From Obrimoposthia wandeli (taxonomy: Eukaryota): a DNA stretch of 64,000 nt. Made by a program: the position numbers and the translations under genes. Below are positions 1-13,843 of this stretch, piece by piece (the stretch's first letter is position 1; every line of letters begins with the position of its first letter). The notes below the pieces were generated by a model that searched no databases, was not told the DNA's origin, and worked only from the letters and a program-made list of their open reading frames with translations. The stretch covers positions 124,001 to 188,000 of the forward strand of contig CDROCS010005135.1 in NCBI GenBank assembly GCA_977020255.1. The letters run 5' to 3'.

Positions 1-687
1 GTTGTTGTTAACTTCACCAACAATTGCCATAGGAACGCCTTCTGCTTTCAATCGATCCATTTCAGGAATGAAATCTAACGCTAAATCAGAGTTACTGCAC
101 AAGCTGTACGTTGTTACGCCATTAATGACACGTTTGGCAACGATTTGGGCGACAACATTCACCCCTTTATCTAACAGATCTCGAACGGCATGCGTATAGT
201 TTGTACTGGTGTAATTTAATTGCTGTGTGCTATTTAAAAAGCTGCCTGCTTTGAAGAAAAATTCATTCACGCAGATATTGCTAGGCATATCGCCTTTACG
301 AAGACCACAGATATAATCAATATCGGGTACATTCGCAAATTCGCGTTTGACGAATGGCCCTAAAAAATTTTTCTCTAACGTACTTTTACCAATAGGTTTT
401 TCGAGTGTAATACCCGTTTCTATACGAAGTGAAATAGAAGGATCGGCTTTAGCTCGTTGATAAAGCGCATTGATAAAAGCAATGGGTTTTCCGATAGCAA
501 GAGGTACGCCGATAACGATTTTCTTTCCAACTTGCGCAATTATTTGATCAACAAGTTCATCTGGTGTTGCTAATGTTTGCGCAGCAGATTTTGTTTCGTT
601 TTCTGTATGTAATGTTTGGTCATCGGAATGACTAGGAGAAAGAGCAGAAGGGTAAATAGGTGTATCTATAAATTCAAGTACAGACAT
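1..687 (-). CDS. Acetyl-CoA hydrolase/CoA-transferase family protein (N-terminal part; runs off the left edge)
   Basis: Not in the ORF track. Manual translation from ATG 687 (RBS AAGGA upstream) gives MSVLEFIDTP...TPDELVDQIIAQVGKKIVIGVPLAIGKPI..., with no stop seen in the frame. The GxPLxxGKP N-terminus is typical of the long acetyl-CoA hydrolase/transferase family. Confidence 0.7.
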   Translation of the reverse strand, partial: MSVLEFIDTPIYPSALSPSHSDDQTLHTENETKSAAQTLATPDELVDQIIAQVGKKIVIGVPLAIGKPIAFINALYQRAKADPSISLRIETGITLEKPIGKSTLEKNFLGPFVKREFANVPDIDYICGLRKGDMPSNICVNEFFFKAGSFLNSTQQLNYTSTNYTHAVRDLLDKGVNVVAQIVAKRVINGVTTYSLCSNSDLALDFIPEMDRLKAEGVPMAIVGEVNNN

Positions 688-968
688 GACAAATTCCTTT
701 TTCACTATATTTACTATTGGTGGCGAGTGTTTGCTAAGTTGTTTTATTATTATCTTTATACTTTTTAAGGATAGAGTTATGACTCTAGTTGTCTATTGAA
801 AATTGAACTTTATTTCAATATGTTGAACCCAATCACAGATAGTTAGGTGAAATAAATAACGATAATTAGGTTGAGGATTCTAAAATAAACAAATAAAGCC
901 GGATGTTCACATAAGTATTTGATTTATTTCTTGTTTTTGGTTTTTGGTTTTTTGTGAGCTCAGCGGTG

Positions 969-988
969 TTCTAATTATAAAATTAGAA
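969..988. promoter_or_regulatory. Perfect 8-4-8 inverted repeat, candidate transcription-factor operator
   Basis: TTCTAATT-ATAA-AATTAGAA in the divergent intergenic region, about 110 nt upstream of the phasin-like gene. Confidence 0.3.
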
Positions 989-1096
989 AGAATGATCTAA
1001 TTTTAATTGCTAACCTTATTTTAATGATAGATGCCATTGTTTCTTTATATTTCATTCGTAATAAGAAGCAGGCTGTAATAAATAAGGGAATTAATT

Positions 1097-1453
1097 ATGA
1101 TGCTCAAAAATATAATCGGAAGTGTTAAATCTGTTACTTCTGTTGGTGAAGAGACTGCTCGCACTGTTTATTTAGCGGGTCTAGGTGCTTATAGCAAAGG
1201 CATGGAACAAAAACAGCAAACTCAAGGCTTGTTAAATAGCCAATTCCGCGCTTTAGTTGATAAAGGTGAATATGTTGAAGCCGAGAGTAAACAGCGTATT
1301 TATTCAACCAAAAAAGTTGTTTTAGGTAACGTTGAAAAGCAGGTTAATTATGTTATTCGCCGTACAAGCGGTATCGACCGTACTAAATTATCAGGCCTTG
1401 AAGAGCGTATTGATACGTTAACGGCAGCTGTTGATAAGCTTTTGCAAAAATAA
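1097..1453 (+). CDS. Phasin-like (PhaI/PhaF-type) granule-associated protein
   Basis: Motifs ARTVYLAGLGAYSK, FRALVDKGE and C-terminal LEERIDTLTAAVDKL match the pattern of the PHA granule-associated protein family. Confidence 0.75.
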   Translation: MMLKNIIGSVKSVTSVGEETARTVYLAGLGAYSKGMEQKQQTQGLLNSQFRALVDKGEYVEAESKQRIYSTKKVVLGNVEKQVNYVIRRTSGIDRTKLSGLEERIDTLTAAVDKLLQK

Positions 1454-1464
1454 GAGGAACATCT

Positions 1465-3141
1465 ATGCCTAGTTTGTCTCTTCTCGACTTAAGTTTCATT
1501 ATTTTTGAATCTGACAAAACACCAATGCATGTAACTGGTTTAGTTATATTAGAACCGCCTAAAGAGCATGCGGATACGTATGCGCAAGATCTCTATGGTG
1601 AATTTTTACAGCAAACTGACGTGACAGCACCTTTTAATTGGAAGCTTCAGTGGTCGTTTACGGGCAAACCAAGCTGGCAAACACTTCCGAGAGTGAATTT
1701 AGACGATCATTTACGTATCACTATGCTTCCATCACCAGGAAATGACCAACAGTTACAACAAGTTGTTGGTCGTTTACATGGTCAAGTATTGGATCGAAGT
1801 CGACCAATGTGGGAAGTATGGGTGATTGGTGGTCTTGAAAATAATCGTGTGGCTATTGTATTTAAAGTTCACCATTCAATGGCGGATGGTGTTCGTGCCA
1901 GCAGTTTATTTACCCGAAGTTGTGCCACAAACCCTGAAGACTCATTTAGCCAGCCTATTTGGCAGTGTGATTTACGTAAAACGGCATCAGAGCGTCGTGC
2001 AGAAACACGTCTTACCAACATGGTAATAAAAACAGCCACGCAAGCATCAAAGCAAATATCGCTTATTCCATCCATGTTCCGATTGGGTAGTAAGCTTGCT
2101 TTAAAAGCGGTAAAGCTGGCTGATTGTGATTTAAAGGTGCCGTTTACAGCGCCCAAAACGCCTTTTAACTTGAGCCCGAAGCGTAGCCGAGCGGTGAGTC
2201 TTGGTCAGTTTTCAATGGGTAGATTGAATCAGCTTAGCCGCATAACAGGTTCATCAATGAATGATGTACTCTTTACGGTAAGCGATATTGCTTTGAATCG
2301 TTACTTAAATGATCGTTCATTACCTTTAAGAAAACCGTTAGTTGCCATGATGCCAATTAATCTTCGTAGTAAAGGAGAGTTGGCAAGTAAAGGTAATAAG
2401 ATGTCTGTCGGGCATGTTGAGCTGGGACGATCGCACTTAACGTCATTAGAGCGATTAGAAGCGATTCAACAGGCAACAGTTGATTTAAAAAATGAAGCCT
2501 TAAATATTTCACCTGATGCTTATATTAATTATTCCCTACTTGTTAATGGTGCGTCTTTAATTAGCGGTAAATTTGGCTTAAATGGGTTTATTCCGCCTGT
2601 AAGTAACTTGCTCATCTCTAATATACCGGGTGTAAAAGACACCTTGTATTTCATGGGTGCAAAGGTGAAAGAGCAATATCCAGTATCGCTACTGATGCCA
2701 GGGCAAACATTGAATATTACATTCTTTAGTAATGCCGGGCAGATGTACTACTCGTTGGTTGCATGTAGCCAGTCTTTACCTGGGTTTGAGGTAATTGCAG
2801 GGTACATGGAAGAAGCCTTAAATGAGTTAGAACAAGACATCATGGATACAGCAGTGTCAGCAGTATCAGAGCAGATGGAAAGCCATGATAGCGAGACAGT
2901 GGCGGTTGAAATGGCGGTACTTGCAGCACGAGAAGCTCTTACGCCAGATGATGCTGAATTTGAACGTTTGTATATAGAGAAACAGCAGCGAGTAGAGCAT
3001 CTGGAAAAGCAATTATCACAGCTAACTGCCATGCTTTCTAAAACTATCGAGATTGATCCTGCGGCTAAGCCGATAAACGAAGAGCTAATGAATGAATCAG
3101 TTGCTATCGATATCATTCCCAAAATTACATCAGCTTCATAA
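1465..3141 (+). CDS. Wax ester synthase/diacylglycerol acyltransferase (WS/DGAT) with C-terminal extension
   Basis: Catalytic HHSMADG (HHxxxDG), N-terminal PMHV, LDRSRPMWE and ISNIPG motifs; RBS AGAGGA; 11 nt after the phasin-like stop. Confidence 0.93.
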   Translation: MPSLSLLDLSFIIFESDKTPMHVTGLVILEPPKEHADTYAQDLYGEFLQQTDVTAPFNWKLQWSFTGKPSWQTLPRVNLDDHLRITMLPSPGNDQQLQQVVGRLHGQVLDRSRPMWEVWVIGGLENNRVAIVFKVHHSMADGVRASSLFTRSCATNPEDSFSQPIWQCDLRKTASERRAETRLTNMVIKTATQASKQISLIPSMFRLGSKLALKAVKLADCDLKVPFTAPKTPFNLSPKRSRAVSLGQFSMGRLNQLSRITGSSMNDVLFTVSDIALNRYLNDRSLPLRKPLVAMMPINLRSKGELASKGNKMSVGHVELGRSHLTSLERLEAIQQATVDLKNEALNISPDAYINYSLLVNGASLISGKFGLNGFIPPVSNLLISNIPGVKDTLYFMGAKVKEQYPVSLLMPGQTLNITFFSNAGQMYYSLVACSQSLPGFEVIAGYMEEALNELEQDIMDTAVSAVSEQMESHDSETVAVEMAVLAAREALTPDDAEFERLYIEKQQRVEHLEKQLSQLTAMLSKTIEIDPAAKPINEELMNESVAIDIIPKITSAS

Positions 3142-3216
3142 AGTAACATAATAAGAAAGACGTTCTTTCCCTTGTTACCGCAATCTATACTTATAGGTTG
3201 CGGTTTTTTCTGCACA

Positions 3217-3245
3217 TAAAAAAAGACCGCATCAAGTGCGGTCTT
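3217..3245 (-). terminator. Intrinsic terminator after ACBP
   Basis: Stem AAGACCGCA/TGCGGTCTT with an A-run on + (U-tail on -). Confidence 0.7.
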
Positions 3246-3268
3246 ATAGTATCTTGGTTATGCATGGG

Positions 3269-3535
3269 TTATGCGTAAGTTGCAGCCATTTTTTCTACTT
3301 GGTCAACATACTTCTGCATCGCAGTTTCAGCATCCATTCCTTTTTGCTTTTCCCATGCTTCGTATTTTGCGGCCCCTTTAAAGTCAAACATACCAGGACG
3401 CTTACCGTGAACGTCGCCATCAGTCGCTTGTTTGAACAAAGAGTACATTGTAAGTAATTCATTGTTTGTTGGGCGCTGAGTCAGTTTCTTAACGTCTAAT
3501 TGTGCTTGTTCAAAGCTTGCTTTTAAATCTGCCAT
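3269..3535 (-). CDS. Acyl-CoA-binding protein (ACBP)
   Basis: LLTMYSLFKQATDGD...PGMFDFKGAAKYEAW is the ACBP signature; 88 aa. Confidence 0.93.
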   Translation of the reverse strand: MADLKASFEQAQLDVKKLTQRPTNNELLTMYSLFKQATDGDVHGKRPGMFDFKGAAKYEAWEKQKGMDAETAMQKYVDQVEKMAATYA

Positions 3536-3604
3536 GATTATCTATCCTTAATTAAGATTATAAAGTTGTTAATACCTAGCCACCGATGAAGGTGGGTTTT
3601 TAAA

Positions 3605-5596
3605 CTACAAGTGAATACCACGTAGTAGTGCAGAGAATGCCATTAACTCTGCTGATGATGCTTTTTCTGTTTTATCCTCTTTACTTTGCTCACTTTCTTT
3701 CGAATCAGGGAACATGCGGAAGCTGCTGTTCATGATTATTTCAGCAAGTTTAGGGAAAAGAGCATTAAGAACAGAACCGAAAATACCTAAGTTAGTCGCA
3801 ATACGCTTTGGCTTATCAATGATTGCCGTTGCTAATAAATCAGCTGCTTGATCTGGCGATAATGTTGGTACCGATTTGTAGATCTTCGTTGGTGCGATCA
3901 TTGGGGTTGCCACTAAAGGCATATTGATCGTTGTGAAGTTAATGTTCATGTCTGAATATTCAGAGGCAGCACAGCGCGTAAATGCATCCATCGCTGCTTT
4001 TGAAGCGACATAAGCAGAGAAACGGGGGGCATTAGTCAGTACGCCAATGGATGAAATATTAATAATATGGCCACCACCTTGTGCTTCCATACTTGGTAGT
4101 AAGCCTAAGGTTAGTTTCAAAGAGCCAAAATAGTTAAGCTGCATTGTGCGTTCAAAGTCATGGAAACGATCAACGGAATTCGCAACAGATCGACGAATTG
4201 AGCGACCAGCGTTGTTAATTAAGATATCAACACGTCCATGCTCAGCCAAAACATTTTCAACGAGTGTATCTACCTGATCTATTTTGGATAAATCGCACTG
4301 GTATGTATGCGCGATACCACCACGATCTTCCACTTCCTTTCTAGTGTAGGCCAGTTTTTCTTCATCACGGGCAACCAAAATCATTTGTGCGCCATTCTCG
4401 GCAAGCTTGAAAGCAGTTGCTTGACCAATACCTGAACTTGCACCGGTGATCAAAATGATCTTGTTTTCTACGCGACCTTTTAGGCTGCGATCACCAGAAA
4501 TTTCTGGATCAAGATGACGCTCCCAATAATCCCAAATGGCAGGGGCATAGCTTGGTAAGCGAGGGCACTCAATACCAGAGCCTTTAAGGGCTTTTTGCGT
4601 TTCACGGCAATCAAATTCTGTAGGGTAGGTGAAGAATTGTAATGCTGATGAAGGAATACCAAGATCTTTCATCGTTACGTCGCTAATTTGTTTAATCGTT
4701 GGTAACGATAAAATAGCGTTCTTCATTTGATTGGGAATAAAGCCAAATAAGCGTGCATCTAAACGTAATGCCATACGAGGCGCATGGCCCGCTTCAGCAA
4801 AAATGTTAAGTACTTCTCCTGAGCGGTAAGGTTTAGGATCCGTTAGGTGAAAACAACGATTATCTAAGCCATCTTTATGCGCAATATAGTCTAGTGCATC
4901 AACAACGTAATCAACGGGTACGATATTAAGACGTCCGCCTTCTAAACCAATAGTTGGTACCCATGCAGGTAATACATTACGAATGCGTTGTAGCATTTTG
5001 AAGAAGTAGTACGGCCCATCGGCACGATCTGCAATCCCCGTTTTTGAATCGCCCACAACCATACCTGGACGGTACACACGAAAGGGGACTTTACATTTTT
5101 CGCGAACAACTTTCTCTGATAAGTGTTTGGTTGAGAAGTAAGGGTGATCTAGATTTTCTGCCTCATCGAACATATCTTCGCTGAAGTGACCTTCGTACAA
5201 GCCAGCTGCTGCAATTGAGCTGATGTGATGGAAGCAACCAGCTTGTAAATTTTCAGCCGCATCGACAGCATTTTGTGTCCCTTCGATGTTAACGGCTTCT
5301 TGTATTTCGGCTGTGGCATTTAAATCATAAATAGCCGCAAGGTGGAAAAAATGCGTAATAGAGCCAGATAATTTTTTAATATCATTTTTGGCTAAACCTA
5401 AACCAGCCTGCGTTAAATCCCCTGTGATAGGTAAGATACGACCCGCTGGAATAGACCATTTCGCTATGTGAGCTTCGAGTATATCTTGTGATTGTTCATT
5501 ATGACAAAGGACGTAAATCGTGCCTTCTCGTTTTAGAAGTCTGGTGATGAGGTTTCGGCCAAGAAAACCTGTTCCGCCAGTCAAAAAATATGCCAT
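3605..5596 (-). CDS. Two-domain fatty acyl-CoA reductase (alcohol-forming, Marinobacter Maqu_2507-type SDR-SDR fusion)
   Basis: N-terminal extended SDR (TGGTGFLG, YFSTK) plus C-terminal classical SDR (TGASSGIG, NNAG, YVASK); 663 aa. Confidence 0.88.
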   Translation of the reverse strand: MAYFLTGGTGFLGRNLITRLLKREGTIYVLCHNEQSQDILEAHIAKWSIPAGRILPITGDLTQAGLGLAKNDIKKLSGSITHFFHLAAIYDLNATAEIQEAVNIEGTQNAVDAAENLQAGCFHHISSIAAAGLYEGHFSEDMFDEAENLDHPYFSTKHLSEKVVREKCKVPFRVYRPGMVVGDSKTGIADRADGPYYFFKMLQRIRNVLPAWVPTIGLEGGRLNIVPVDYVVDALDYIAHKDGLDNRCFHLTDPKPYRSGEVLNIFAEAGHAPRMALRLDARLFGFIPNQMKNAILSLPTIKQISDVTMKDLGIPSSALQFFTYPTEFDCRETQKALKGSGIECPRLPSYAPAIWDYWERHLDPEISGDRSLKGRVENKIILITGASSGIGQATAFKLAENGAQMILVARDEEKLAYTRKEVEDRGGIAHTYQCDLSKIDQVDTLVENVLAEHGRVDILINNAGRSIRRSVANSVDRFHDFERTMQLNYFGSLKLTLGLLPSMEAQGGGHIINISSIGVLTNAPRFSAYVASKAAMDAFTRCAASEYSDMNINFTTINMPLVATPMIAPTKIYKSVPTLSPDQAADLLATAIIDKPKRIATNLGIFGSVLNALFPKLAEIIMNSSFRMFPDSKESEQSKEDKTEKASSAELMAFSALLRGIHL

Positions 5597-5652
5597 GTGC
5601 TCTCCTTAATATACAACTGATCTAATAACATTCCTTTTAGAAATACAAAATA

Positions 5653-5669
5653 CACTGGTCAGAGCTCTT
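5653..5669. promoter_or_regulatory. Candidate FadR operator
   Basis: CACTGGTCAGAGCTCTT matches 13/17 of the gammaproteobacterial FadR consensus AACTGGTCAGACCAGTT; lies between the divergent reductase and GMC genes. Confidence 0.45.
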
Positions 5670-5898
5670 GTTGTTATCAAATGATTGAAAATACTAAACA
5701 GATCACCTTTTTATTTAAATTAACGGTAAGATTTCATCTTAAGTGAAAAAATTAATAAGTTTTTTGGAAGTTACACTATGATTTATAATGGTGGCAAAGA
5801 ATGGTTTTATATTAAAAACAACATTTTTTATAATAACAATATTAACTTTAAATAAAATTGGCTGGCAATTATCATTACAATGAATGTGAGAGGGTGTT

Positions 5899-7536
5899 AT
5901 GTATGACTTTATAATTGTAGGTGCAGGATCTGCAGGGTGTGTACTTGCTAATAGATTGTCAGCCGATAAAAAGATAAAAGTTTGTTTAGTAGAAGCAGGG
6001 CCAAAAGATTCAAGTATTATGGTGCATGTTCCATTGGGTTTGATTGGAATGATGCATTCAAAAAAAATGAATTGGCGTTATTATACCGAGCAAGAATCAC
6101 ACCTTGGCGGACGAAAGTTATTTTGGCCTCGTGGTAAGACACTTGGAGGAAGTAGTGCTTCTAATGCGATGTGTTACATCCGTGGGCATGCGTGTGATTA
6201 CGATGAATGGGTAACATTAGGTAATGACGGCTGGGGATATAGTGATGTGCTCCCTTACTTTAAAAAGGCACAACACCAAGAGCGTGGTGCTTGTACTTAT
6301 CATGGTGCGGGCGGTCCGTTAAATGTCGCTGATTTACGGACAAAAAATCCATTATCAAAAGCGTTTCTCAACGCTTCGCAGCAAGCTGGACATAAGCTAA
6401 CGGATGACTTTAACGGCGAAGATCAAGAAGGTGTCGGCTATTATCAGGTAACGCAAAAAAATGGTCAGCGTTGTAGCTCTGCCGTTGGGTATTTACGGCC
6501 AGTCGAACAAAGAGAAAACCTTACCGTTATTACAGATGCACTGACGACAAAAATTAACTTTGATGGTAACGCTGCAGTCGGTATAGATTACCTTGAAAAG
6601 GGTAAAAAACATACGATAACCGCAACGAAAGAAGTCATTCTTAGTGGGGGGGCAATTAATAGTCCTCAGCTCTTGTTAGTTTCTGGTGTTGGTGGAAAAG
6701 ATGTTTTAAATCAACATGGTATAGAGCAGGTTTGTGAGCTTGATGGCGTTGGTAAAAATTTACAAGATCATCTTGATGTACTGGCTGTAACCCGTGAGCG
6801 TACTTTTCACTCTGTTGGTTTTTCACCTGTTGCCTTAATGCGTTCGATTAAAGGTATTTTTGACTTTTTATTATTTCGAAAGGGTAACTTCACCACAAAT
6901 ATTGCGGAGGCTGGTGGCTTTGTAAAGAGTGACCCCTCCCTTGCTGCACCTGATGTTCAATTTCACTTTTCACCGTGTTTTCTTGATAATCATGGTCTTA
7001 ATCTATTGCAAACAGTTAGGCATGGTTATTCATTACATGCATGTAATCTTCGCCCTAAAAGCAGAGGAGAACTGACATTAAGAAGTGCAGATCCCGCTGT
7101 TCCTCCATTGATTAATGCTCGTTATTTAGAGAACAAAGAAGACATCCAAATCATGATAAAGGGCATTAAAATGTCTCGTGAAATCTTGAAGCAACCAGCT
7201 TTTGATCATTACCGAGGCGTTGAAGTATTTCCAGGGAAAGAGGTTCAAACAGACGAAGAGTTAGAAGCGTTTATTCGCCGAAAAGCAGAGTCGATTTACC
7301 ATCCAGTTGGCACTTGTAAAATGGGTGTTGATGATCAAGCGGTTGTTGACCCAACGCTAAAGGTTATTGGCCTTAAAGCTTTACGTGTTGTAGACGCATC
7401 AATCATGCCTACGTTAATTGGCGGTAATACCAATGCGCCGACCATTATGATTGCTGAAAAAGCAGCTGATATGATTTTGGCTGATTATAAAAAGAAAAAT
7501 ACTGAAATAAAGGTAAAAGAAACAACTAAAGCTTAA
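5899..7536 (+). CDS. GMC oxidoreductase (AlkJ-like alcohol dehydrogenase / choline dehydrogenase family)
   Basis: GAGSAG FAD-binding, [24 protein letters not shown] and GGNTNAP motifs. Confidence 0.9.
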
Positions 7537-7550
7537 TGGTATTATTTGTA

Positions 7551-7588
7551 AACGTAAAAAGGCTGAATTATTTCAGCCTTTTTACGTT
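7551..7588. terminator. Perfect 17-bp-stem hairpin, bidirectional terminator
   Basis: AACGTAAAAAGGCTGAA-TTAT-TTCAGCCTTTTTACGTT directly after the GMC stop. Confidence 0.8.
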
Positions 7589-7867
7589 AAATATAAAGAT
7601 TAGGGTGAGTATTCTAATTTTTATGAATATACTATATAAGATATGCTTAATTATTATATTTTCTTGTTAAGATAACTACATTTTAGTTGCCGTTCTGCTT
7701 TTTTATTTCATTTCAATAAATCTACTGTAAATATGTATTAGCGATACAAAGTGTGATTGTATAGATATCGTATAATAAGTATTATTATACGATTGCTAAC
7801 ATATTAGGCTTTGGAAAATACGTACCGTTATATGAAAGCATTTAGAACCACAAATCGGGGTGTGAGT

Positions 7868-8977
7868 ATGATTTCAAGGAATAACCTGAGTCAGAAATTC
7901 CAAGCATTGATGGATGAAATTTCTTCTAAAATGGTTGAGAACACCGGAGTCGCTAAAGATAAAGTCACAGAATTTATCGAGCAGGGTCTACCACCCGTCC
8001 AGAGTGATGCAGTGATTGCTACCTTAAATGGCATGGTAGGTGATTCTCTTGAACAGCGAGACAGCCGTTTTGCTCAAAAGATGCAGTTTCGCGATCAACA
8101 ACAAACCCTAAGTGACGATCCGGCTTTATTACCTCTTCAACTCCCCGATGCGACAGACAGAATTATACTTTGCGTACACGGTTGGTGCATGAATGATGTG
8201 CAATGGTTACGTAAAGAGCATGACCATGGTCGTTTCATGGCGACATTTGGCTATACCCCCATCTACCTCCGTTATAACACTGGTATGCATATTTCAGCTA
8301 ACGGCGAAGAGTTTGCATTAAAGCTTGAGGCGTTATTAGCCGCTTGGCCATGTGCGGTCACTGAGTTAGTGATTGTAGGTCATAGTATGGGCGGGTTGGT
8401 TACTCGCAGTGCTTGTTATTATGGCAAAAAGCATGATGTGGATTGGTTAGATAAATTAACCACGTTTATTACATTAGGCACACCACATAATGGTGCCCCA
8501 TTGGCTAAGCTGGCAAGCTGGGTTGATGAAAGAATTGCAGATGCGCCGTATTTAAAAGTGTTAAGTAAAGTCGCGGAAATCCGCAGTAGCGGGACAAGAG
8601 ACCTAAGCCATGGCTTCATTTGCCATAGTGATTGGCAGCAAGATGAAGAAACAAGAAAGATACTTAAAAAGCGACCTACGTTGCCTGAAGGGGTTGCATG
8701 TTATGCGATAGCGAGCTGCCTTGGGAATAATTTTTATGATGAGAAAAGCCAAATGTTAGGCGATGGGCTCGTGCCAGTATCAAGTGCATTAGGCGATGCG
8801 GAAACAGGGCATATTGGGTTAGATTATCCACCTAAACATAAGTGGATAGGCGAGGGGATAAACCATCTCGACTTGCTTTCTCATCCCCTTATCATGTCTA
8901 AAATCAAAGAATGGATTTTAGACAACACGATCCAGCCCTTTGACCTGCGTGAAGGCCCGTTACGTTCTGGTTGTTGA
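7868..8977 (+). CDS. Alpha/beta-hydrolase lipase/esterase (PGAP1-like)
   Basis: GHSMGG nucleophile elbow, LGTPHNG, GDGLVP (Asp), NHLDLL (His). Start uncertain (TTG 7811, ATG 7832 or ATG 7868). Confidence 0.82.
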   Translation: MISRNNLSQKFQALMDEISSKMVENTGVAKDKVTEFIEQGLPPVQSDAVIATLNGMVGDSLEQRDSRFAQKMQFRDQQQTLSDDPALLPLQLPDATDRIILCVHGWCMNDVQWLRKEHDHGRFMATFGYTPIYLRYNTGMHISANGEEFALKLEALLAAWPCAVTELVIVGHSMGGLVTRSACYYGKKHDVDWLDKLTTFITLGTPHNGAPLAKLASWVDERIADAPYLKVLSKVAEIRSSGTRDLSHGFICHSDWQQDEETRKILKKRPTLPEGVACYAIASCLGNNFYDEKSQMLGDGLVPVSSALGDAETGHIGLDYPPKHKWIGEGINHLDLLSHPLIMSKIKEWILDNTIQPFDLREGPLRSGC

Positions 8978-9136: not shown

Positions 9137-9898
9137 ATGAAAAAAATACTTTTTCTCTGCACTGGCAATTCGGCACGATCTCAATTGGCTGAAGCACTAA
9201 TGCGGCACATGGCAGATGATAGTTATGAAGTGATGAGTGCGGGTATGAGCCCCGAAACTGTCGATGAGCGTGTTTATACAGTTTTATCTCAATACGGCGT
9301 CAATAGTGACAATCTTCAAAGTATTTCAGCAGAATCATTACATGATCAGCATTTTGATGTGGTTATTACGTTATGTGATAAGGCGAGTAATGAGTGTGGA
9401 TTATTCCCTGAATCTGATGCGTTGATCCATTGGGATTTTAAAGATCCTAAACCACAAGAGGGGGCTCAGGGTTTCGTTGATACCTATGAAGGGCTTAAAG
9501 CAAGAATCGCATTATTTTTGATGTTAAATGGTGAAGATCAAAGTGATGCTGTCGGTCCTGTTGAACTTTTTAAGATCATGAGTGATCCGCTTCGTCTTCG
9601 TATCTTGATGTTGATTGAAGATGAGTTTGCCCTTTCTGTGGGCGATTTAACGAAAGCCTTGTCTGTTAGTCAGCCAAAAGTTTCTCGTCATCTTGCTCTA
9701 TTGCGTGATGCGGGGATTTTGAAAGATCAACGTGAAGGTTTATGGGTTTTCTATCGTTTACCTGAGAATTTACCTGTTTGGATCCACCACATATTAACAA
9801 CGGTACGCAATGGTAATCCTGGGCTAATCAATAATGAAAAATTAAAGCTCAGCCAGATTAAAGATAGAAAAAAGCCAGGATTTAGTAAGAAAAAATAA
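9137..9898 (+). CDS. ArsC (LMW-PTP-fold arsenate reductase) - ArsR/SmtB HTH fusion
   Basis: N-terminal CTGNSARSQ loop plus C80/C87; C-terminal SDPLRLRIL...SQPKVSRHLALLRDAG...WVFYRL ArsR HTH. Confidence 0.9.
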   Translation: MKKILFLCTGNSARSQLAEALMRHMADDSYEVMSAGMSPETVDERVYTVLSQYGVNSDNLQSISAESLHDQHFDVVITLCDKASNECGLFPESDALIHWDFKDPKPQEGAQGFVDTYEGLKARIALFLMLNGEDQSDAVGPVELFKIMSDPLRLRILMLIEDEFALSVGDLTKALSVSQPKVSRHLALLRDAGILKDQREGLWVFYRLPENLPVWIHHILTTVRNGNPGLINNEKLKLSQIKDRKKPGFSKKK

Positions 9899-9964
9899 GT
9901 TTTATGGACACTGATCTCTCAAGGTTTTAGTCATTTCAAAACAATAAAATTATAGGTACACACA

Positions 9965-10477
9965 ATGTCGAATACACATCCATTTTGGGCTCTTTCTCTA
10001 GATGTAACTTCGGGCAACCAAGGCGCACAACTTCTGCTAACGCCTTGCCCTGGAAAGAAAGAAGCAAATTTGCATGATTCATTAGTACAATTAAAAGAGG
10101 CAGGGGCAACCGCTGTTTTAACGGCATTGCAAGAAAGTGACTTACCTGATGGCGGACTTGAGCTGTTAACACAAGAATGTAATACGTTAGGGCTTAAGTG
10201 GTTTCACCTTCCTATTGAAGATGATTGTGCCCCAGGCGAAGCATTTGATGCAAACTGGGAAGCTGCCAATACCGCTGCACAAGCAATATTAGATAATGGC
10301 GAGTCATTAGCTATTCATTGCATGGGGGGGTCTGGTCGAACAGGGTTGATTGCCGCACGTTTGATGTTAGATCGTGGTGTTGAATTAGAATCTACGATTG
10401 CACAAATTCAAGCACTTCGTCCGGGGGCATTTACCCGTCAACCACACATTGATTACATTCGGCAGTTTGTTAAGTAA
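9965..10477 (+). CDS. CX5R dual-specificity/CDKN3-like protein phosphatase (VarH-like)
   Basis: HCMGGSGRTG P-loop, PIEDD general-acid loop, LLTPCPG motif; located inside the ars cluster. Confidence 0.85.
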   Translation: MSNTHPFWALSLDVTSGNQGAQLLLTPCPGKKEANLHDSLVQLKEAGATAVLTALQESDLPDGGLELLTQECNTLGLKWFHLPIEDDCAPGEAFDANWEAANTAAQAILDNGESLAIHCMGGSGRTGLIAARLMLDRGVELESTIAQIQALRPGAFTRQPHIDYIRQFVK

Positions 10478-10527
10478 GCGGTTTATCAGGGTTGGAGTGT
10501 TATTTAACCTATAGATAAGCCAGAATT

Positions 10528-10571
10528 AAGCCCCTTAGCGCAAGAGTTACAACGTGCTAAGGGGCTTTTTT
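10528..10571 (+). terminator. Intrinsic terminator after the phosphatase gene
   Basis: 12-bp stem AAGCCCCTTAGC/GCTAAGGGGCTT plus T-run. Confidence 0.7.
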
Positions 10572-10623
10572 ACAGAAAAAACTGGTCAATCGCGATAAGG
10601 TTATATAATATCCGAATTATCAT

Positions 10624-10643
10624 ATATATGAATTTACATATAT
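10624..10643. promoter_or_regulatory. Candidate ArsR operator 2
   Basis: ATATATGA-ATTT-ACATATAT just upstream of the GAPDH start; matches operator 1. Confidence 0.6.
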
Positions 10644-10687
10644 TATAAGTTAGTTTGAATTAGCATTGAATCAATAAGGGTAAGAAC

Positions 10688-11689
10688 ATGACAATTAAAG
10701 TCGGTATTAATGGTTTTGGTCGTATCGGACGTTTAGCACTTCGCGCAGCCTTTGATTGGGAAGAATTAGAATTTGTTCAGATAAATGATGTGGCTGGTGA
10801 TGCAAAAACACTGGGGCATTTACTTGAGTTCGATTCGATTCAAGGTCGTTGGAATCATGCCGTTACTGTCGAAGATGACCAGCTGTTGATTGGCGATGTA
10901 AAAATCACATGTACCCAAGAGCGTGATATTGATGCTGTCGATTGGTCGGGTTGTGATGTTGTTCTTGAAGCAACGGGCGTTCATCGTAAAACATCATTAC
11001 TGCAAAAATACCTCGACCAGGGGGTAAAACGTGTTGTTGTATCTGCCCCCGTAAAAGAAGAAGGTGTACTCAATGTGGTGGTGGGTGTGAATGATCATTT
11101 ATTTGATCCAGAAAAGCACCGTATCGTTACAGCAGCATCATGTACTACCAACTGTATTGCACCGATTGTTAAGGTGATTCATGAGAAGATCGGTATCGAT
11201 CAAGCCTCTTTTACGACAATTCATAATTTAACCAACACCCAAACCATTCTTGATGCGCCGCATAAAGATCTCCGTCGTGCACGTTCATGTGGTTCAAGCT
11301 TGATTCCAACCACAACGGGTTCTGCTACTGCTATTGTAGAAATTTTCCCTGAATTAAAAGGTAAAATTAACGGTCATGCAGTACGTGTACCTTTAGCTAA
11401 CGCATCGTTAACGGACATTATTTTTGATGTTAGCCGAGATACAACGGCTGAAGAAATTAACGCACTGCTAAAAGAAGCATCAGAAACTGAAATGGTGGGT
11501 GTACTGGGTTTTGAAGATCGCCCACTTGTCTCAATTGATTACAAAGGTGATCAACGCTCAACAATTGTTGATGCACTATCTACCATGGTTGTTAATAACC
11601 GCATGGTAAAAATTTACGCTTGGTACGATAACGAAATGGGCTACGCAACGCGTACTTCAGAGCTTATTCGTCAAGTTGGCTCAGTGTAG
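10688..11689 (+). CDS. ArsJ-associated glyceraldehyde-3-phosphate dehydrogenase
   Basis: [18 protein letters not shown] catalytic Cys, WYDNE; directly upstream of arsJ. Confidence 0.95.
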
Positions 11690-11795
11690 ATACAGTTAGC
11701 ACAGTCATTGACTACGTTGATGATCGCTAACAAAGAAAATGACTCCGTATTTATGAATCAGTAATAAATGCGGAGAATGAAATAGAGATATCGGA

Positions 11796-13028
11796 ATGAT
11801 TGCAGCGTTTTCAAATCTGTCGAAAGATGTAAAGCAGTACATGTTGGTGACGTTTAACTATTGGAACTTCACTATCACCGATGGTGCATTACGCATGCTG
11901 GTGATATTGCATTTCCATCAACTAGGCTATTCACCTCTCGAAATCGCATCGCTATTTTTGTTTTATGAATTTTTTGGTGTTGTGACCAACCTTATTGGTG
12001 GTTGGCTTGGTGCGAAGGTCGGATTAAATCGCACGATGAATATTGGACTTGCCTTGCAGGTTATTGCCTTAGTCATGCTCGCTATACCGACAGATTTCCT
12101 TACCGTTGCTTGGGTGATGTTGGCGCAAGCGATGTCGGGCATAGCCAAAGATTTAAATAAAATGAGCGCGAAAAGTGCCATCAAAACCTTAGTGCCAAAT
12201 GATCAACAAGGTGCATTGTATAAGTGGATTGCGATTCTAACAGGTTCTAAAAATGCCCTTAAAGGCGCAGGATTTTTTCTGGGCGGTTTACTGTTAGCGG
12301 TATTAGGCTTTCAAGGTTCAGTGTTGATAATGGCGGGGGTGTTGGCGATTGTATTTTGCATGAGTTTGCTTTGGCTTGAGAAAGACATGGGAAAAGCCAA
12401 GAATAAGATAAAATTTAGTCAGATATTTTCAAAAAGTGAGAGTATCAATATTCTGTCTGCCGCCCGTATGTTTTTGTTTGGCGCGCGTGATGTATGGTTT
12501 GTTGTTGCACTGCCTATTTACCTCGGGCAAGTATTTGGCTGGGACCATGTAATGGTTGGGGGCTTTCTTGCTACTTGGGTTATTGCTTATGGTGTGGTGC
12601 AAGGTTTTGCTCCTCGGTTAACGGGTAAAGCGAAAGGTGTTGTGCCAGATGGACGAGCTGCGATGGGCTGGGCTGCTTTGCTTGCCGCTATTACTGCAAT
12701 TATTGCGCTTGGCGTACAGTTTCATTGGCAGCCAGAGCTGACTATTATCGTGGGTCTATTAATTTTTGGCGCGGTATTTGCGGTTAATTCTTCACTGCAT
12801 TCATATTTGATTGTGAGCTACGCCAAAGATGATGGTGTATCGCTGGATGTTGGCTTTTACTACATGGCTAATGCGATGGGGCGTTTAATTGGCACCATTT
12901 TATCGGGTTGGGTGTATCAAGAGTACGGACTTGCTGCTTGTTTATGGGTCTCTTTTGTTTTCTTAGCCATAACAACGGTGATTTCTATTCGTTTACCTGC
13001 ACACCCTAAGATACAAGCTGCTTTATAA
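11796..13028 (+). CDS. arsJ: Organoarsenical efflux MFS transporter ArsJ
   Basis: YWNFTITDGALRML, AKDLNKMSAKS, GSKNALKG and VGFYYMANAMGRL motifs; GAPDH neighbour. Confidence 0.92.
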   Translation: MIAAFSNLSKDVKQYMLVTFNYWNFTITDGALRMLVILHFHQLGYSPLEIASLFLFYEFFGVVTNLIGGWLGAKVGLNRTMNIGLALQVIALVMLAIPTDFLTVAWVMLAQAMSGIAKDLNKMSAKSAIKTLVPNDQQGALYKWIAILTGSKNALKGAGFFLGGLLLAVLGFQGSVLIMAGVLAIVFCMSLLWLEKDMGKAKNKIKFSQIFSKSESINILSAARMFLFGARDVWFVVALPIYLGQVFGWDHVMVGGFLATWVIAYGVVQGFAPRLTGKAKGVVPDGRAAMGWAALLAAITAIIALGVQFHWQPELTIIVGLLIFGAVFAVNSSLHSYLIVSYAKDDGVSLDVGFYYMANAMGRLIGTILSGWVYQEYGLAACLWVSFVFLAITTVISIRLPAHPKIQAAL

Positions 13029-13153
13029 CGTCGCACGATGGCAACTTGGGTATAAGTATTCATTAACACATTAATAACGATGTGTTGGTGAATTTTTTGC
13101 TTTCAGCAGAACTAACTTCTAACATAGCCACTTCAGTTTGTTGGGGAAATATA

Positions 13154-13843
13154 ATGCGGGCTATTTGTTTTGATTTTGATGGCACTCTTGTCGATTCTGA
13201 AGTGTTCCATGCTGAAAATTGGTCTGTGTTTTTAAAGACATTAGATATCGATTTTTCAGTGGGGGCATTTCTTGCTCAGTATGCCGGTGTAACATGGGAT
13301 AAGGTGGCGACAGATCTTTTTACGCGCTTTCCCATTAGTATGCCGATTGAGCACATGCTGCAACAAATGGAAGCAATAACAGAAAAAGCGCTAATGCTTG
13401 ATAATATTCCGGCTAAATCGGGCGTGAGTACATTGCTGCATGAGCTATCAGGTAAAGTGCCTTTAGCGGTTGTTACTGGCGCGCCACGTATTTATGTTGA
13501 AGGTATTTTACAGCGTCATGGTTGGCTTGAATTATTTGATCATGTTTTCTGTGGTGAAGATGTAGCCTCTAACAAACCCGCTCCCGATATATACCAATTA
13601 GCGTGTAAAACGTTAGGTTTTAATCCTCATGAAGTCTTAGCGATTGAAGACAGTGTTACTGGCATCAAATCGTCGTTATCCGCGGGATTAAAAACAGTAT
13701 TAGTGAACGATATTGATGTTATCGACTCTTCTATAGACACCTCAAAACATGGACTGCTTGAATTGGATTACTCTTTTGATTCAATGCATCAAGCACACCC
13801 AACGGTATTGAATTTAGCAACACGTTCAATTCGACACATTTAG
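13154..13843 (+). CDS. HAD-family phosphatase (subfamily IA)
   Basis: Motif I FDFDGTLVDS, motif III KPAPDIY, motif IV IEDS. ATG 13154 has RBS GGGGA; the track start 13082 is probably too early. Confidence 0.85.
   Translation: MRAICFDFDGTLVDSEVFHAENWSVFLKTLDIDFSVGAFLAQYAGVTWDKVATDLFTRFPISMPIEHMLQQMEAITEKALMLDNIPAKSGVSTLLHELSGKVPLAVVTGAPRIYVEGILQRHGWLELFDHVFCGEDVASNKPAPDIYQLACKTLGFNPHEVLAIEDSVTGIKSSLSAGLKTVLVNDIDVIDSSIDTSKHGLLELDYSFDSMHQAHPTVLNLATRSIRHI

Follow-up and report, generated by a model that had tools for sequence, protein, structure and literature searches.

Does a run of seven adjacent lipid-type genes from the Photobacterium profundum group encode a self-contained cycle in which wax esters are made, stored and mobilised again, as a sequence-only reading had proposed, or only part of such a cycle? 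The genes lie at the start of the window (the whole 64-kb stretch of DNA analysed), which is affiliated with that group by 97–99% protein identity; the host Photobacterium is a deep-sea bacterium. All seven open reading frames were confirmed in place, each matching the family named for it, and their order is identical in P. profundum SS9 and P. atrarenae; the gene content of the locus is real and a chance pattern is excluded. Four of the genes make up a well-supported core, in which those for a phasin-related protein and a WS/DGAT converge with those for a Maqu_2507-type fatty acyl-CoA reductase (FAR) and an acyl-CoA-binding protein (ACBP); this support comes from high-scoring family matches with their motifs intact, from paired terminators and from the clustering of the same genes elsewhere. 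The other three, encoding a GMC oxidoreductase, a lipase-like hydrolase and a CoA-transferase-like protein, are weakly tied to this core, mostly by gene order within the genus.

Gene families of the core and its neighbours

The WS/DGAT (wax-ester synthase/diacylglycerol acyltransferase; 558 aa, positions 1465–3141, plus strand) contains PF03007 and PF06974 and scored 358.8 bits against TIGR02946 (cut-off 310). Its HHSMADG motif occupies residues 136–142, where 18 relatives show no variation at H136, H137, D141 and G142, and it matches the solved enzymes of Marinobacter (6chj, E 4e-65) and Acinetobacter (7nxg, E 1e-59); a C-terminal extension of ~100 residues (about 2830–3138) is found in Photobacterium orthologues only. 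Separated from it by an 11-nt gap, the upstream gene for the phasin-related protein (118 aa, 1097–1453, plus strand) encodes a probable neutral-lipid-body coat protein, as suggested by matches to PF05597 Phasin (34.7 bits, cut-off 28.8) and NF047773 (66.2 bits, cut-off 35). The modest size of this phasin match, together with a TIGR01837 score under the cut-off, counts against the four-gene core as an explanation.

On the minus strand, the 663-aa reductase (3605–5596) matched the PRK07201 equivalog model (NF005539) over its full length (residues 1–663; 986 bits, cut-off 549), with NAD_binding_4 at residues 5–234, adh_short at 379–568 and Rossmann and YxxxK motifs readable in the translation of both domains; its C-terminal half resembles PRK05866, a stand-alone SDR of ~294 aa (313 bits). 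Marinobacter orthologues of 661 aa have the same two-domain build and share 61–62% identity with it across 100% of its length, genus-mates from which we infer its identity to Maqu_2507. The latter is a characterised reductase that takes acyl-CoA or acyl-ACP to the alcohol (PMC7744569). The gene for the 88-aa ACBP (3269–3535; PF00887, 101 bits), also on the minus strand, follows that of the reductase; the protein matches solved ACBPs over its full length (E 2e-22).

The same two enzyme families occur here and in the pathway of Marinobacter aquaeolei VT8 (Maqu_2507 or Maqu_2220 with Ma-WS/DGAT). In Marinobacter, however, the reductase gene stands alone, without WS/DGAT, ACBP or phasin genes nearby, whereas in Photobacterium the four genes are adjacent and accompanied by a FadR-like site; that the reductase is unclustered in the genus where the pathway was characterised counts against the four-gene core as an explanation. 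The Acr1 and AtfA genes of Acinetobacter baylyi ADP1, to our knowledge, are not arranged as in this locus; the 7nxg match of the WS/DGAT and the SDR-like C-terminal half of the reductase recall that system. Acr1, in contrast to the two-domain reductase here, has one domain and carries the reduction no further than the aldehyde (PMC7744569). Coat and regulator families are also common to these loci and the PHA granule system (phasins, PHA_gran_rgn, PhaD-type TetR), from which the loci differ in holding WS/DGAT and fatty acyl-CoA reductase instead of PHA synthase.

The GMC-family FAD oxidoreductase (545 aa, 5899–7536, plus strand; PF00732 GMC_oxred_N and PF05199 GMC_oxred_C) is a candidate alcohol dehydrogenase or oxidase. 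At 680 bits (cut-off 605) it belongs to the PRK02106 subfamily, shared with the membrane-associated alcohol and choline dehydrogenases AlkJ and BetA, but it differs from BetA in falling under the equivalog cut-off (TIGR01810, 572 against 732 bits) and in having neither betB nor betI as a neighbour; its best solved relatives are choline dehydrogenase, chloramphenicol oxidoreductase and alcohol oxidases, and "AlkJ-like" is for this enzyme a label. The PGAP1-like alpha/beta hydrolase, an orthologue of PBPRA2211 (388 aa, 7811–8977, plus strand; PF07819, 38.4 bits), carries GHSMGG at residues 190–195, and its S192, D318 and H352 do not vary across 36 homologues. Translation probably begins at M20 (position 7868), the RefSeq forms being 369 aa long. 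In the AlphaFold model (pLDDT 82.8), residues ~20–82 form a three-helix N-terminal extension and the predicted fold is lipase-like, the nearest solved folds being family I bacterial lipases (E ~5e-8, TM 0.4–0.6); no signal peptide is evident in the protein, which is described as cytoplasmic.

The CoA transferase claimed earlier is rightly located, but the window start cuts it to the N-terminal 229 residues (1–687, minus strand) of an acetyl-CoA hydrolase/transferase-family protein of ~750 aa, and this fragment matched nothing in Pfam or NCBIfam. The SS9 orthologue, 756 aa long, has PF13336 AcetylCoA_hyd_C at residues 472–639 and is related to 4-hydroxybutyrate CoA-transferases. The gene is divergent from the phasin gene and adjoins WS/DGAT in five Photobacterium species and in no other genera.

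Terminators, a predicted FadR-like operator and RNA-library coverage

Convergent intrinsic-terminator-like hairpins (3177–3245; 3177–3204 on the plus strand, 3245–3223 on the minus strand) divide the phasin–WS/DGAT unit from the reductase–ACBP unit. Contigs from four marine-sediment metatranscriptome studies, which come from related strains and may include DNA carry-over, covered all core genes at 90–99% identity and bridged phasin to WS/DGAT and ACBP to reductase; they were sparse across intergenic regions, with a depth minimum at 3000–3199. A further hairpin, A+T-rich and trailed by a run of T, lies immediately downstream of the GMC stop codon (7556–7589, plus strand; AAAAAGGCTGAA-TTAT-TTCAGCCTTTTT); a consensus terminator scan missed it because its stem is G+C-poor. 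It is probably the terminator of the GMC gene, in which case the hydrolase would have its own promoter in this strain.

Ahead of the reductase, in the divergent reductase/GMC intergenic region, we found a predicted FadR-like operator, CACTGGTCAGAGCTCTT (5653–5669), 56 nt upstream of the start codon, which agrees with 12 of the 16 specified positions of AACTGGTCNGACCAGTT; only three sites in the window match the pattern this well. Equivalent sites lie 29–59 nt 5′ of the reductase in SS9, P. atrarenae, P. jeanii, Ferrimonas pelagia, Corallincola and the relative L089 (four mismatches in Photobacterium, two in F. pelagia, three in Corallincola), so that the box precedes the reductase in four lineages, each with a background chance of 0.5–1.7% per 150-nt window. 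As negative controls, the regions before the reductase in Marinobacter, one Ferrimonas MAG and 11 metagenome loci lack the site (6–8 mismatches). The four mismatches in Photobacterium, and a sequence scan that could place no promoter relative to the operator, count against this part of the explanation. The operator is a new observation here; FadR binding and its sign are predictions.

Co-location across genera and within Photobacterium

The closest relatives of both the WS/DGAT (~48% identical in Ferrimonas) and the reductase (62–66%) lie in clusters of the order phasin(s)–WS/DGAT–esterase–TetR–ACBP–DUF2505–reductase in F. pelagia (without ACBP), Corallincola platygyrae and L089. These clusters hold the same core genes, with phasin genes directly 5′ of WS/DGAT, and the FadR-like box; in place of their hormone-sensitive-lipase-type esterase, TetR and DUF2505, none of which occurs in the whole window, Photobacterium has the GMC, hydrolase and CoA-transferase-like genes. 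ACBP adjoins the reductase in P. jeanii, Corallincola, L089 and many metagenome loci, and 14 of 35 ACBP-anchored metagenome loci (≥8 kb) hold a Maqu_2507-type reductase or a WS/DGAT. The synthesis and storage half of the proposed cycle is accordingly supported, both by the equivalog match of the reductase and by the clustering of WS/DGAT, ACBP and phasin-related protein with it in at least three lineages besides Photobacterium.

Clusters with the same core have been described from Antarctic and Subantarctic sediment metagenomes, where ws/dgat lies beside ACBP, an SDR 59–62% identical to Maqu_2507 and a phasin/PHA-system protein on scaffolds assigned to Beta- and Gammaproteobacteria (PMC10351704, 2023). 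Those scaffolds are uncultured, Photobacterium is absent from them, and no GMC, PGAP1-like hydrolase, CoA transferase or regulator site was reported. The claim that no such locus had been described in this lineage holds within the literature searched, which also yielded no lipid or enzyme data for any Photobacterium, but it would not hold for this kind of cluster in general.

Uniform co-conservation of the genes failed on inspection of the genus, an outcome that the sequence-only reading had itself named as one that would refute it. P. damselae carries WS/DGAT–ACBP–GMC–hydrolase, but reductase, phasin and CoA transferase are missing there; P. sanctipauli has no reductase at the locus; in P. 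jeanii and P. kagoshimensis nothing but CoA-transferase–WS/DGAT remains at this site, the reductase–ACBP–GMC–hydrolase block of P. jeanii lying away from WS/DGAT. This instability counts against the four-gene core as an explanation. Moreover, the conserved genus-level order extends to unrelated ArsC–ArsR fusion, phosphatase, GAPDH, MFS and HAD genes, so adjacency within Photobacterium proves little.

Competing explanations and proposed function

We consider it unlikely that all seven genes form a closed cycle, in which acyl-CoA is converted via the alcohol into wax ester, kept on coated bodies, and is recovered by the lipase and AlkJ-type GMC re-oxidation, with the CoA transferase re-activating the acid. 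The hydrolase always adjoins GMC in the Photobacterium loci seen, and wherever ACBP and reductase occur there, both stay beside them, even in the moved block of P. jeanii; the two genes overlap in P. damselae, and reductase and GMC share the intergenic region that contains the FadR-like box. The invariant Ser-Asp-His set, lipase-like fold and lack of an evident signal peptide in the hydrolase agree with such a cycle, as do its true orthologue (268 bits) ~3 kb from an ACBP–WS/DGAT–TetR–reductase cluster on a non-Photobacterium contig (L171), the esterase of another family in the clusters of other genera and the sub-cut-off BetA score of GMC. Yet the genus order embraces clearly unrelated genes, the other genera have no GMC gene in their clusters, a probable terminator of its own follows GMC in this strain, and CoA transferases of this family use short acids, with only a domain-level match above threshold. 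The locus encodes neither an aldehyde dehydrogenase nor an acyl-CoA synthetase, which leaves the cycle incomplete. Neither the self-contained form of the claim nor its mobilisation half was borne out: the fold of the hydrolase fits, but the surroundings of two distant homologues are unrelated, with no comparable lipid-storage neighbours, and GMC is only putatively AlkJ-like.

Two narrower alternatives seem to us improbable. The WS/DGAT might make mainly triacylglycerol or other esters while the reductase serves separately in aldehyde detoxification or in producing free or secreted fatty alcohols, wax storage then not being the function of the locus. WS/DGAT orthologues are indeed kept without a reductase at the locus in P. 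damselae, P. sanctipauli and P. kagoshimensis, no P. damselae protein is among the close reductase relatives, and both its name and its solved members mark the family as bifunctional. Against this, reductase and WS/DGAT share a cluster in four lineages where the former is present, and the neighbourhood has none of the Kennedy-pathway genes (GPAT, AGPAT, PAP), unlike the TAG-type clusters of PMC10351704. We give equally little credence to the phasin-related protein belonging to PHB granules, its place 5′ of WS/DGAT being incidental. Members of the genus classically accumulate PHB, whose granules the protein could serve, and both its PF05597 match and a PHA_gran_rgn gene in the Ferrimonas cluster would fit. 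Against this stand the short gap to WS/DGAT and the RNA-library contigs bridging both genes, the failed PHA_granule_1 model (TIGR01837, 30.9 against 94.7 bits), the position of phasin before WS/DGAT in four lineages with PHA synthase in none of these loci, and the recurrence of PHA_gran_rgn next to ACBP and WS/DGAT in metagenome loci.

A four-gene core for wax-ester synthesis and storage under FadR-type control, arranged as two convergent transcription units, is the best explanation and, in our judgement, a probable one. In the reductase–ACBP unit, the reductase would use NADPH to form fatty alcohol from long-chain acyl-CoA (or acyl-ACP), while ACBP may buffer acyl-CoA or hand it over; in the phasin–WS/DGAT unit, WS/DGAT would join the alcohol to a second acyl-CoA, yielding wax ester, and probably could also acylate diacylglycerol. 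The neutral-lipid bodies so formed would receive a coat of phasin-related protein, and the putative operator would link the reductase unit to the cellular level of long-chain acyl-CoA. The GMC oxidoreductase and lipase-like hydrolase are plausible accessories for alcohol re-oxidation and ester hydrolysis, and the CoA-transferase-like gene would be a conserved neighbour of the core. Given the similar clusters in other marine bacteria, the Photobacterium locus appears to be a credible candidate for the known wax-ester pathway.

Gene content of the lipid locus

Seven ORFs occupy the initial 9 kb of the window, and their order and motifs are those that the sequence-only reading had described. Six of them were matched directly in family scans, and the host of the locus belongs to the Photobacterium profundum group. 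The WS/DGAT protein (558 aa) scored 358.8 bits as a whole protein against TIGR02946 (cut-off 309.95) and comprises PF03007 and PF06974 domains (catalytic, residues 4–268; C-terminal, residues 310–455). Its catalytic HHxxxDG motif reads HHSMADG (residues 136–142), with H136, H137, D141 and G142 invariant among 18 relatives, and the protein is a predicted wax-ester and/or TAG synthase. It is 97% identical to its counterpart in P. profundum SS9, and its nearest relatives beyond the genus, in Ferrimonas, share ~48% identity. An acidic, helix-prone C-terminal extension of ~100 residues (residues ~456–558, window 2830–3138) is common to all Photobacterium orthologues (548–561 aa) and is missing in Ferrimonas (465–471 aa), Corallincola (482 aa), locus L089 from a further relative (495 aa) and solved enzymes. 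The neighboring phasin-related protein (118 aa) matched PF05597 (34.7 bits vs 28.8) and NF047773 (66.2 vs 35) and missed the PHA_granule_1 subfamily TIGR01837 (30.9 bits vs a cut-off of 94.7); no sequence relative was found among solved structures.

On the opposite strand, the reductase (663 aa) aligned over residues 1–663 with profile positions 1–657 of NF005539 (986 bits vs 549), making it a full-length equivalog of the Maqu_2507-type family PRK07201 with two domains, PF07993 (NAD_binding_4, residues 5–234) and PF00106 (classical SDR, residues 379–568). As read from the translation, the GGTGFLG and YFSTK motifs of the N-terminal domain and the TGASSGIG and YVASK motifs of the C-terminal domain are intact, and a four-electron reduction of acyl-CoA to alcohol is predicted for the enzyme. 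The reductase is 98% identical to proteins of P. profundum and P. frigidiphilum, and its nearest relatives beyond the genus are found in L089 (66%), Kistimonas (64%) and Corallincola (62%); it also shares 61–62% identity over 100% of its length with many 661-aa Marinobacter proteins, a set that does not include the VT8 sequence. A role in supplying luciferase aldehyde was considered for this enzyme and dropped, because no lux genes lie nearby and its clustering partners are of storage type. The accompanying ACBP (88 aa) matched PF00887 almost end to end (101.1 bits vs 28.3; residues 6–80 on profile positions 2–76 of 76) and solved ACBPs at an E-value of 2e-22, and its KQA..GD and KYxAW motifs are preserved, with K35, Q36, A37, G40, D41, K57, Y58 and W61 invariant.

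Proposed transcription units and a FadR-like operator

The phasin-related and WS/DGAT genes (plus strand, 11-nt gap) and the reductase and ACBP genes (minus strand, 69-nt gap) form two proposed convergent units, separated by paired terminator hairpins (3177–3204 on the plus strand, 3245–3223 on the minus strand). A further A+T-rich hairpin followed by a T-run lies 3′ of the GMC gene (~7556–7589), so the hydrolase gene is probably transcribed alone in this strain; in P. damselae, the GMC and hydrolase genes overlap. RNA contigs from marine-sediment metatranscriptomes of four studies matched the phasin-related, WS/DGAT, ACBP, reductase and GMC genes at 90–99% identity, single contigs bridge phasin-WS/DGAT (1199–2678) and ACBP-reductase (3259–3856), and contig depth reaches its minimum over the two intergenic regions. 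These contigs stem from related strains and do not in themselves prove transcription; their pattern fits the proposed units and suggests that close relatives make use of these genes in the environment. Separately, two of the RNA libraries (X1 and X2) yielded contigs with an “opposite strands” joint near the phasin start codon (1048–1195); this may reflect either misassembly of an A+T-rich leader or a genuine inverted structure. The 409-nt divergent stretch between the CoA-transferase-like and phasin genes (688–1096) is itself very A+T-rich.

Within the divergent intergenic region between the reductase and GMC genes, a FadR-like site, CACTGGTCAGAGCTCTT (5653–5669), agrees with 12 of the 16 specified positions of AACTGGTCNGACCAGTT, the FadR consensus of E. 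coli and Vibrio; only three sites as good as this one occur in the 64-kb window. Seven loci from four lineages have such a site, with 2–4 mismatches, 29–59 nt upstream of the reductase ATG, those beyond the window being P. profundum SS9, P. atrarenae, P. jeanii, Ferrimonas pelagia (2 mismatches), Corallincola (3 mismatches) and L089, at a background chance per site of 0.5–1.7% per 150-nt window. P. sanctipauli, in which the reductase has been lost, carries the site upstream of ACBP instead. As a negative control, Marinobacter, a Ferrimonas MAG and 11 metagenome loci gave only matches with 6–8 mismatches, and many of the metagenome loci have a TetR in place of the site. From this distribution of sites, we infer that FadR, a long-chain-acyl-CoA sensor, would control the reductase-ACBP unit in these lineages. 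The region upstream of the phasin-WS/DGAT unit (688–1096) lacks any FadR-like site at ≤4 mismatches. A consensus promoter scan, aimed at telling repression from activation at the FadR-like site, returned 26 matches, compared to 26.0 expected in shuffled sequence, none of them usefully placed. No paper linking FadR to native wax-ester genes was found in the literature searched.

Conservation of the cluster within and beyond Photobacterium

Comparison across the genus, built on exact-protein look-ups, showed that the seven-gene set is only partly co-conserved. P. profundum SS9 and P. atrarenae have the identical seven genes, and P. sanctipauli has an ORF of 547 aa without a family in the reductase position. 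P. damselae retains WS/DGAT-ACBP-GMC-hydrolase and is devoid of the reductase, phasin and CoA transferase genes at this locus, and no P. damselae protein was found among the close relatives of the reductase. Only CoA-transferase-WS/DGAT is present at the locus in P. kagoshimensis; P. jeanii has the same pair there, with ACBP-reductase and GMC-hydrolase more than 10 kb away. The P. sanctipauli ORF (L085:11896–13539) matched no Pfam family and gave a faint N-terminal cytochrome c551-like match. A Photobacterium-like metagenome contig (L094, LLEM01000131.1) shows the P. jeanii arrangement (phosphatase-ArsCR-hydrolase-GMC and reductase-ACBP), each gene being split over two to four frames, which could be sequencing error or decay.

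Downstream of the hydrolase gene (9137–13843) lie genes for an ArsC-ArsR fusion, a dual-specificity phosphatase, GAPDH, an MFS transporter and a HAD hydrolase, in an order that is the same in five Photobacterium species, and in P. jeanii the ArsC-ArsR and phosphatase genes relocate along with the GMC-hydrolase block. Since conserved order thus reaches plainly unrelated genes, adjacency within the genus is weak evidence of shared function. Horizontal transfer was also considered for the locus; nothing points to an island, given that its G+C content (0.35–0.45) matches the rest of the window.

Outside the genus, the cluster takes the form phasin(s)-WS/DGAT-esterase-TetR-ACBP-DUF2505-reductase, as read in three relatives (Ferrimonas pelagia, Corallincola platygyrae and L089), with Ferrimonas pelagia having no ACBP gene and an additional PHA_gran_rgn gene. 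The esterase of these clusters is of the hormone-sensitive-lipase family and is related to LipY. DUF2505 directly adjoins the reductase in Ferrimonas, L089 and Corallincola (L084:12963–13460, L089:10007–10513, L090:10000–10503) and may be an uncharacterized partner of it. No HSL-type esterase, DUF2505, PhaD-like TetR or PHA_gran_rgn gene was found in the whole 64-kb window. In a metagenome scan anchored on ACBP, 35 loci reached a length of 8 kb or more; a Maqu_2507-type reductase or WS/DGAT occurred in 14 of them, TetR in 13 and PHA_gran_rgn in 5. The matches listed for a WS/DGAT-anchored genome scan comprised a single Photobacterium locus alongside 79 distantly related ones, and hardly any of the 79 had the other genes nearby. 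The orthologous reductase of Marinobacter stands alone, whereas that of the window is clustered.

The cross-genus clusters and the metagenome co-location thus identify the four-gene core (phasin-related, WS/DGAT, ACBP and reductase) as a recurrent module. The GMC, PGAP1-like hydrolase and CoA-transferase-like genes are best regarded as Photobacterium additions, with thin support outside it: 3 of the 35 ACBP-anchored loci had a hydrolase match, one of which is a true PGAP1-like orthologue (268 bits). This orthologue (L171:9457–10731), found on a metagenome contig from outside Photobacterium, is separated by ~3 kb from an ACBP-WS/DGAT-TetR-reductase-PHA_gran_rgn cluster and is the only outside hint tying the hydrolase to the module.

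Candidate mobilization genes and a proposed wax-ester body module

The GMC protein (545 aa) reached the broad PRK02106 subfamily (679.8 bits vs 605) and fell below the BetA equivalog TIGR01810 (572.1 bits vs 732.1), and no bet genes are found among its neighbors. Its nearest solved structures are choline dehydrogenase, chloramphenicol oxidoreductase, alcohol oxidases and fatty-acid photodecarboxylase, and a tblastn search against plasmids yielded nothing beyond genes with the generic name “choline dehydrogenase” (~50% identity), so that “AlkJ-like” is a label for this protein and not a result. The GHSMGG protein (388 aa), a PGAP1-like alpha/beta hydrolase orthologous to PBPRA2211, matched PF07819 (38.4 bits vs 24.3), and the residues of its GxSxG nucleophile elbow (H191, S192, M193, G194, G195) as well as D318 and H352 are invariant across 36 homologues. 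Its predicted structure (pLDDT 82.8) has an N-terminal three-helix extension, and the top Foldseek matches are family I bacterial lipases (1ys1, 6wpx, 4hs9, 1ex9; E ~5e-8) at a TM of only 0.4–0.6 and 13–20% identity. No signal peptide was evident by reading the sequence, and these features are compatible with an intracellular lipase. The true start is most likely M20 (window 7868): residues 1–21 are modeled with low confidence (pLDDT below 50), M20 itself is conserved in nearly all homologues and RefSeq lists forms of 369 aa. Two distant homologues of the hydrolase lie in unrelated gene contexts.

The gene called a CoA transferase is present on the minus strand, cut by the window edge, and the fragment inside the window (the first 229 residues) matches no family. 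Its 756-aa SS9 orthologue contains AcetylCoA_hyd_C (140 bits), related to 4-hydroxybutyrate CoA-transferases, and falls far below all NCBIfam equivalogs (at most 40 bits vs at least 500). The family is known for short acids. For this reason, and because the locus has no aldehyde dehydrogenase or acyl-CoA synthetase and the seven-gene set breaks up between species, the “self-contained closed cycle” drawn for the locus is overstated: the reading is supported for the predicted synthesis, plausible for storage and unproven for mobilization.

A larger proposal, which we regard as possible if somewhat doubtful, is that a hitherto uncharacterized “wax-ester body” module is widespread in marine and freshwater Proteobacteria, with Photobacterium as a host. 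PHA-granule-type proteins (phasin-related, PHA_gran_rgn and PhaD-like TetR) would have been co-opted for the coating and regulation of neutral-lipid bodies, bacterial ACBP would channel acyl-CoA between the Maqu_2507-type reductase and WS/DGAT, and FadR would switch the reductase arm by acyl-CoA in FadR-bearing Gammaproteobacteria. The PGAP1-like lipase and the GMC alcohol oxidoreductase would form Photobacterium’s own mobilization pair.

Among Gram-negative bacteria, Acinetobacter and Marinobacter are the genera in which wax-ester storage has been elucidated; their genes are scattered, and we know of no dedicated coat, carrier or regulator established there. The enzymes of the locus are textbook, and the pathway they would make up is already known biochemically. 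Metagenomic scaffolds have been described in which ws/dgat lies beside ACBP, a Maqu_2507-like SDR (59–62% identity) and phasin or PHA-system genes (PMC10351704, 2023). In the literature searched, we found no paper on Photobacterium WS/DGAT function, and the SS9 locus tags PBPRA2211–2216 were absent. The added value of the present analysis is modest and consists of the FadR-like operator and the recognition of a recurrent four-gene core. P. profundum is a genetically tractable deep-sea model organism, and its compact cluster would offer a clean system for asking whether phasin-like proteins and bacterial ACBP help to form neutral-lipid bodies and whether FadR gates alcohol formation. If the proposal is true, such a module would gain in Photobacterium its first piezophilic host amenable to genetics.
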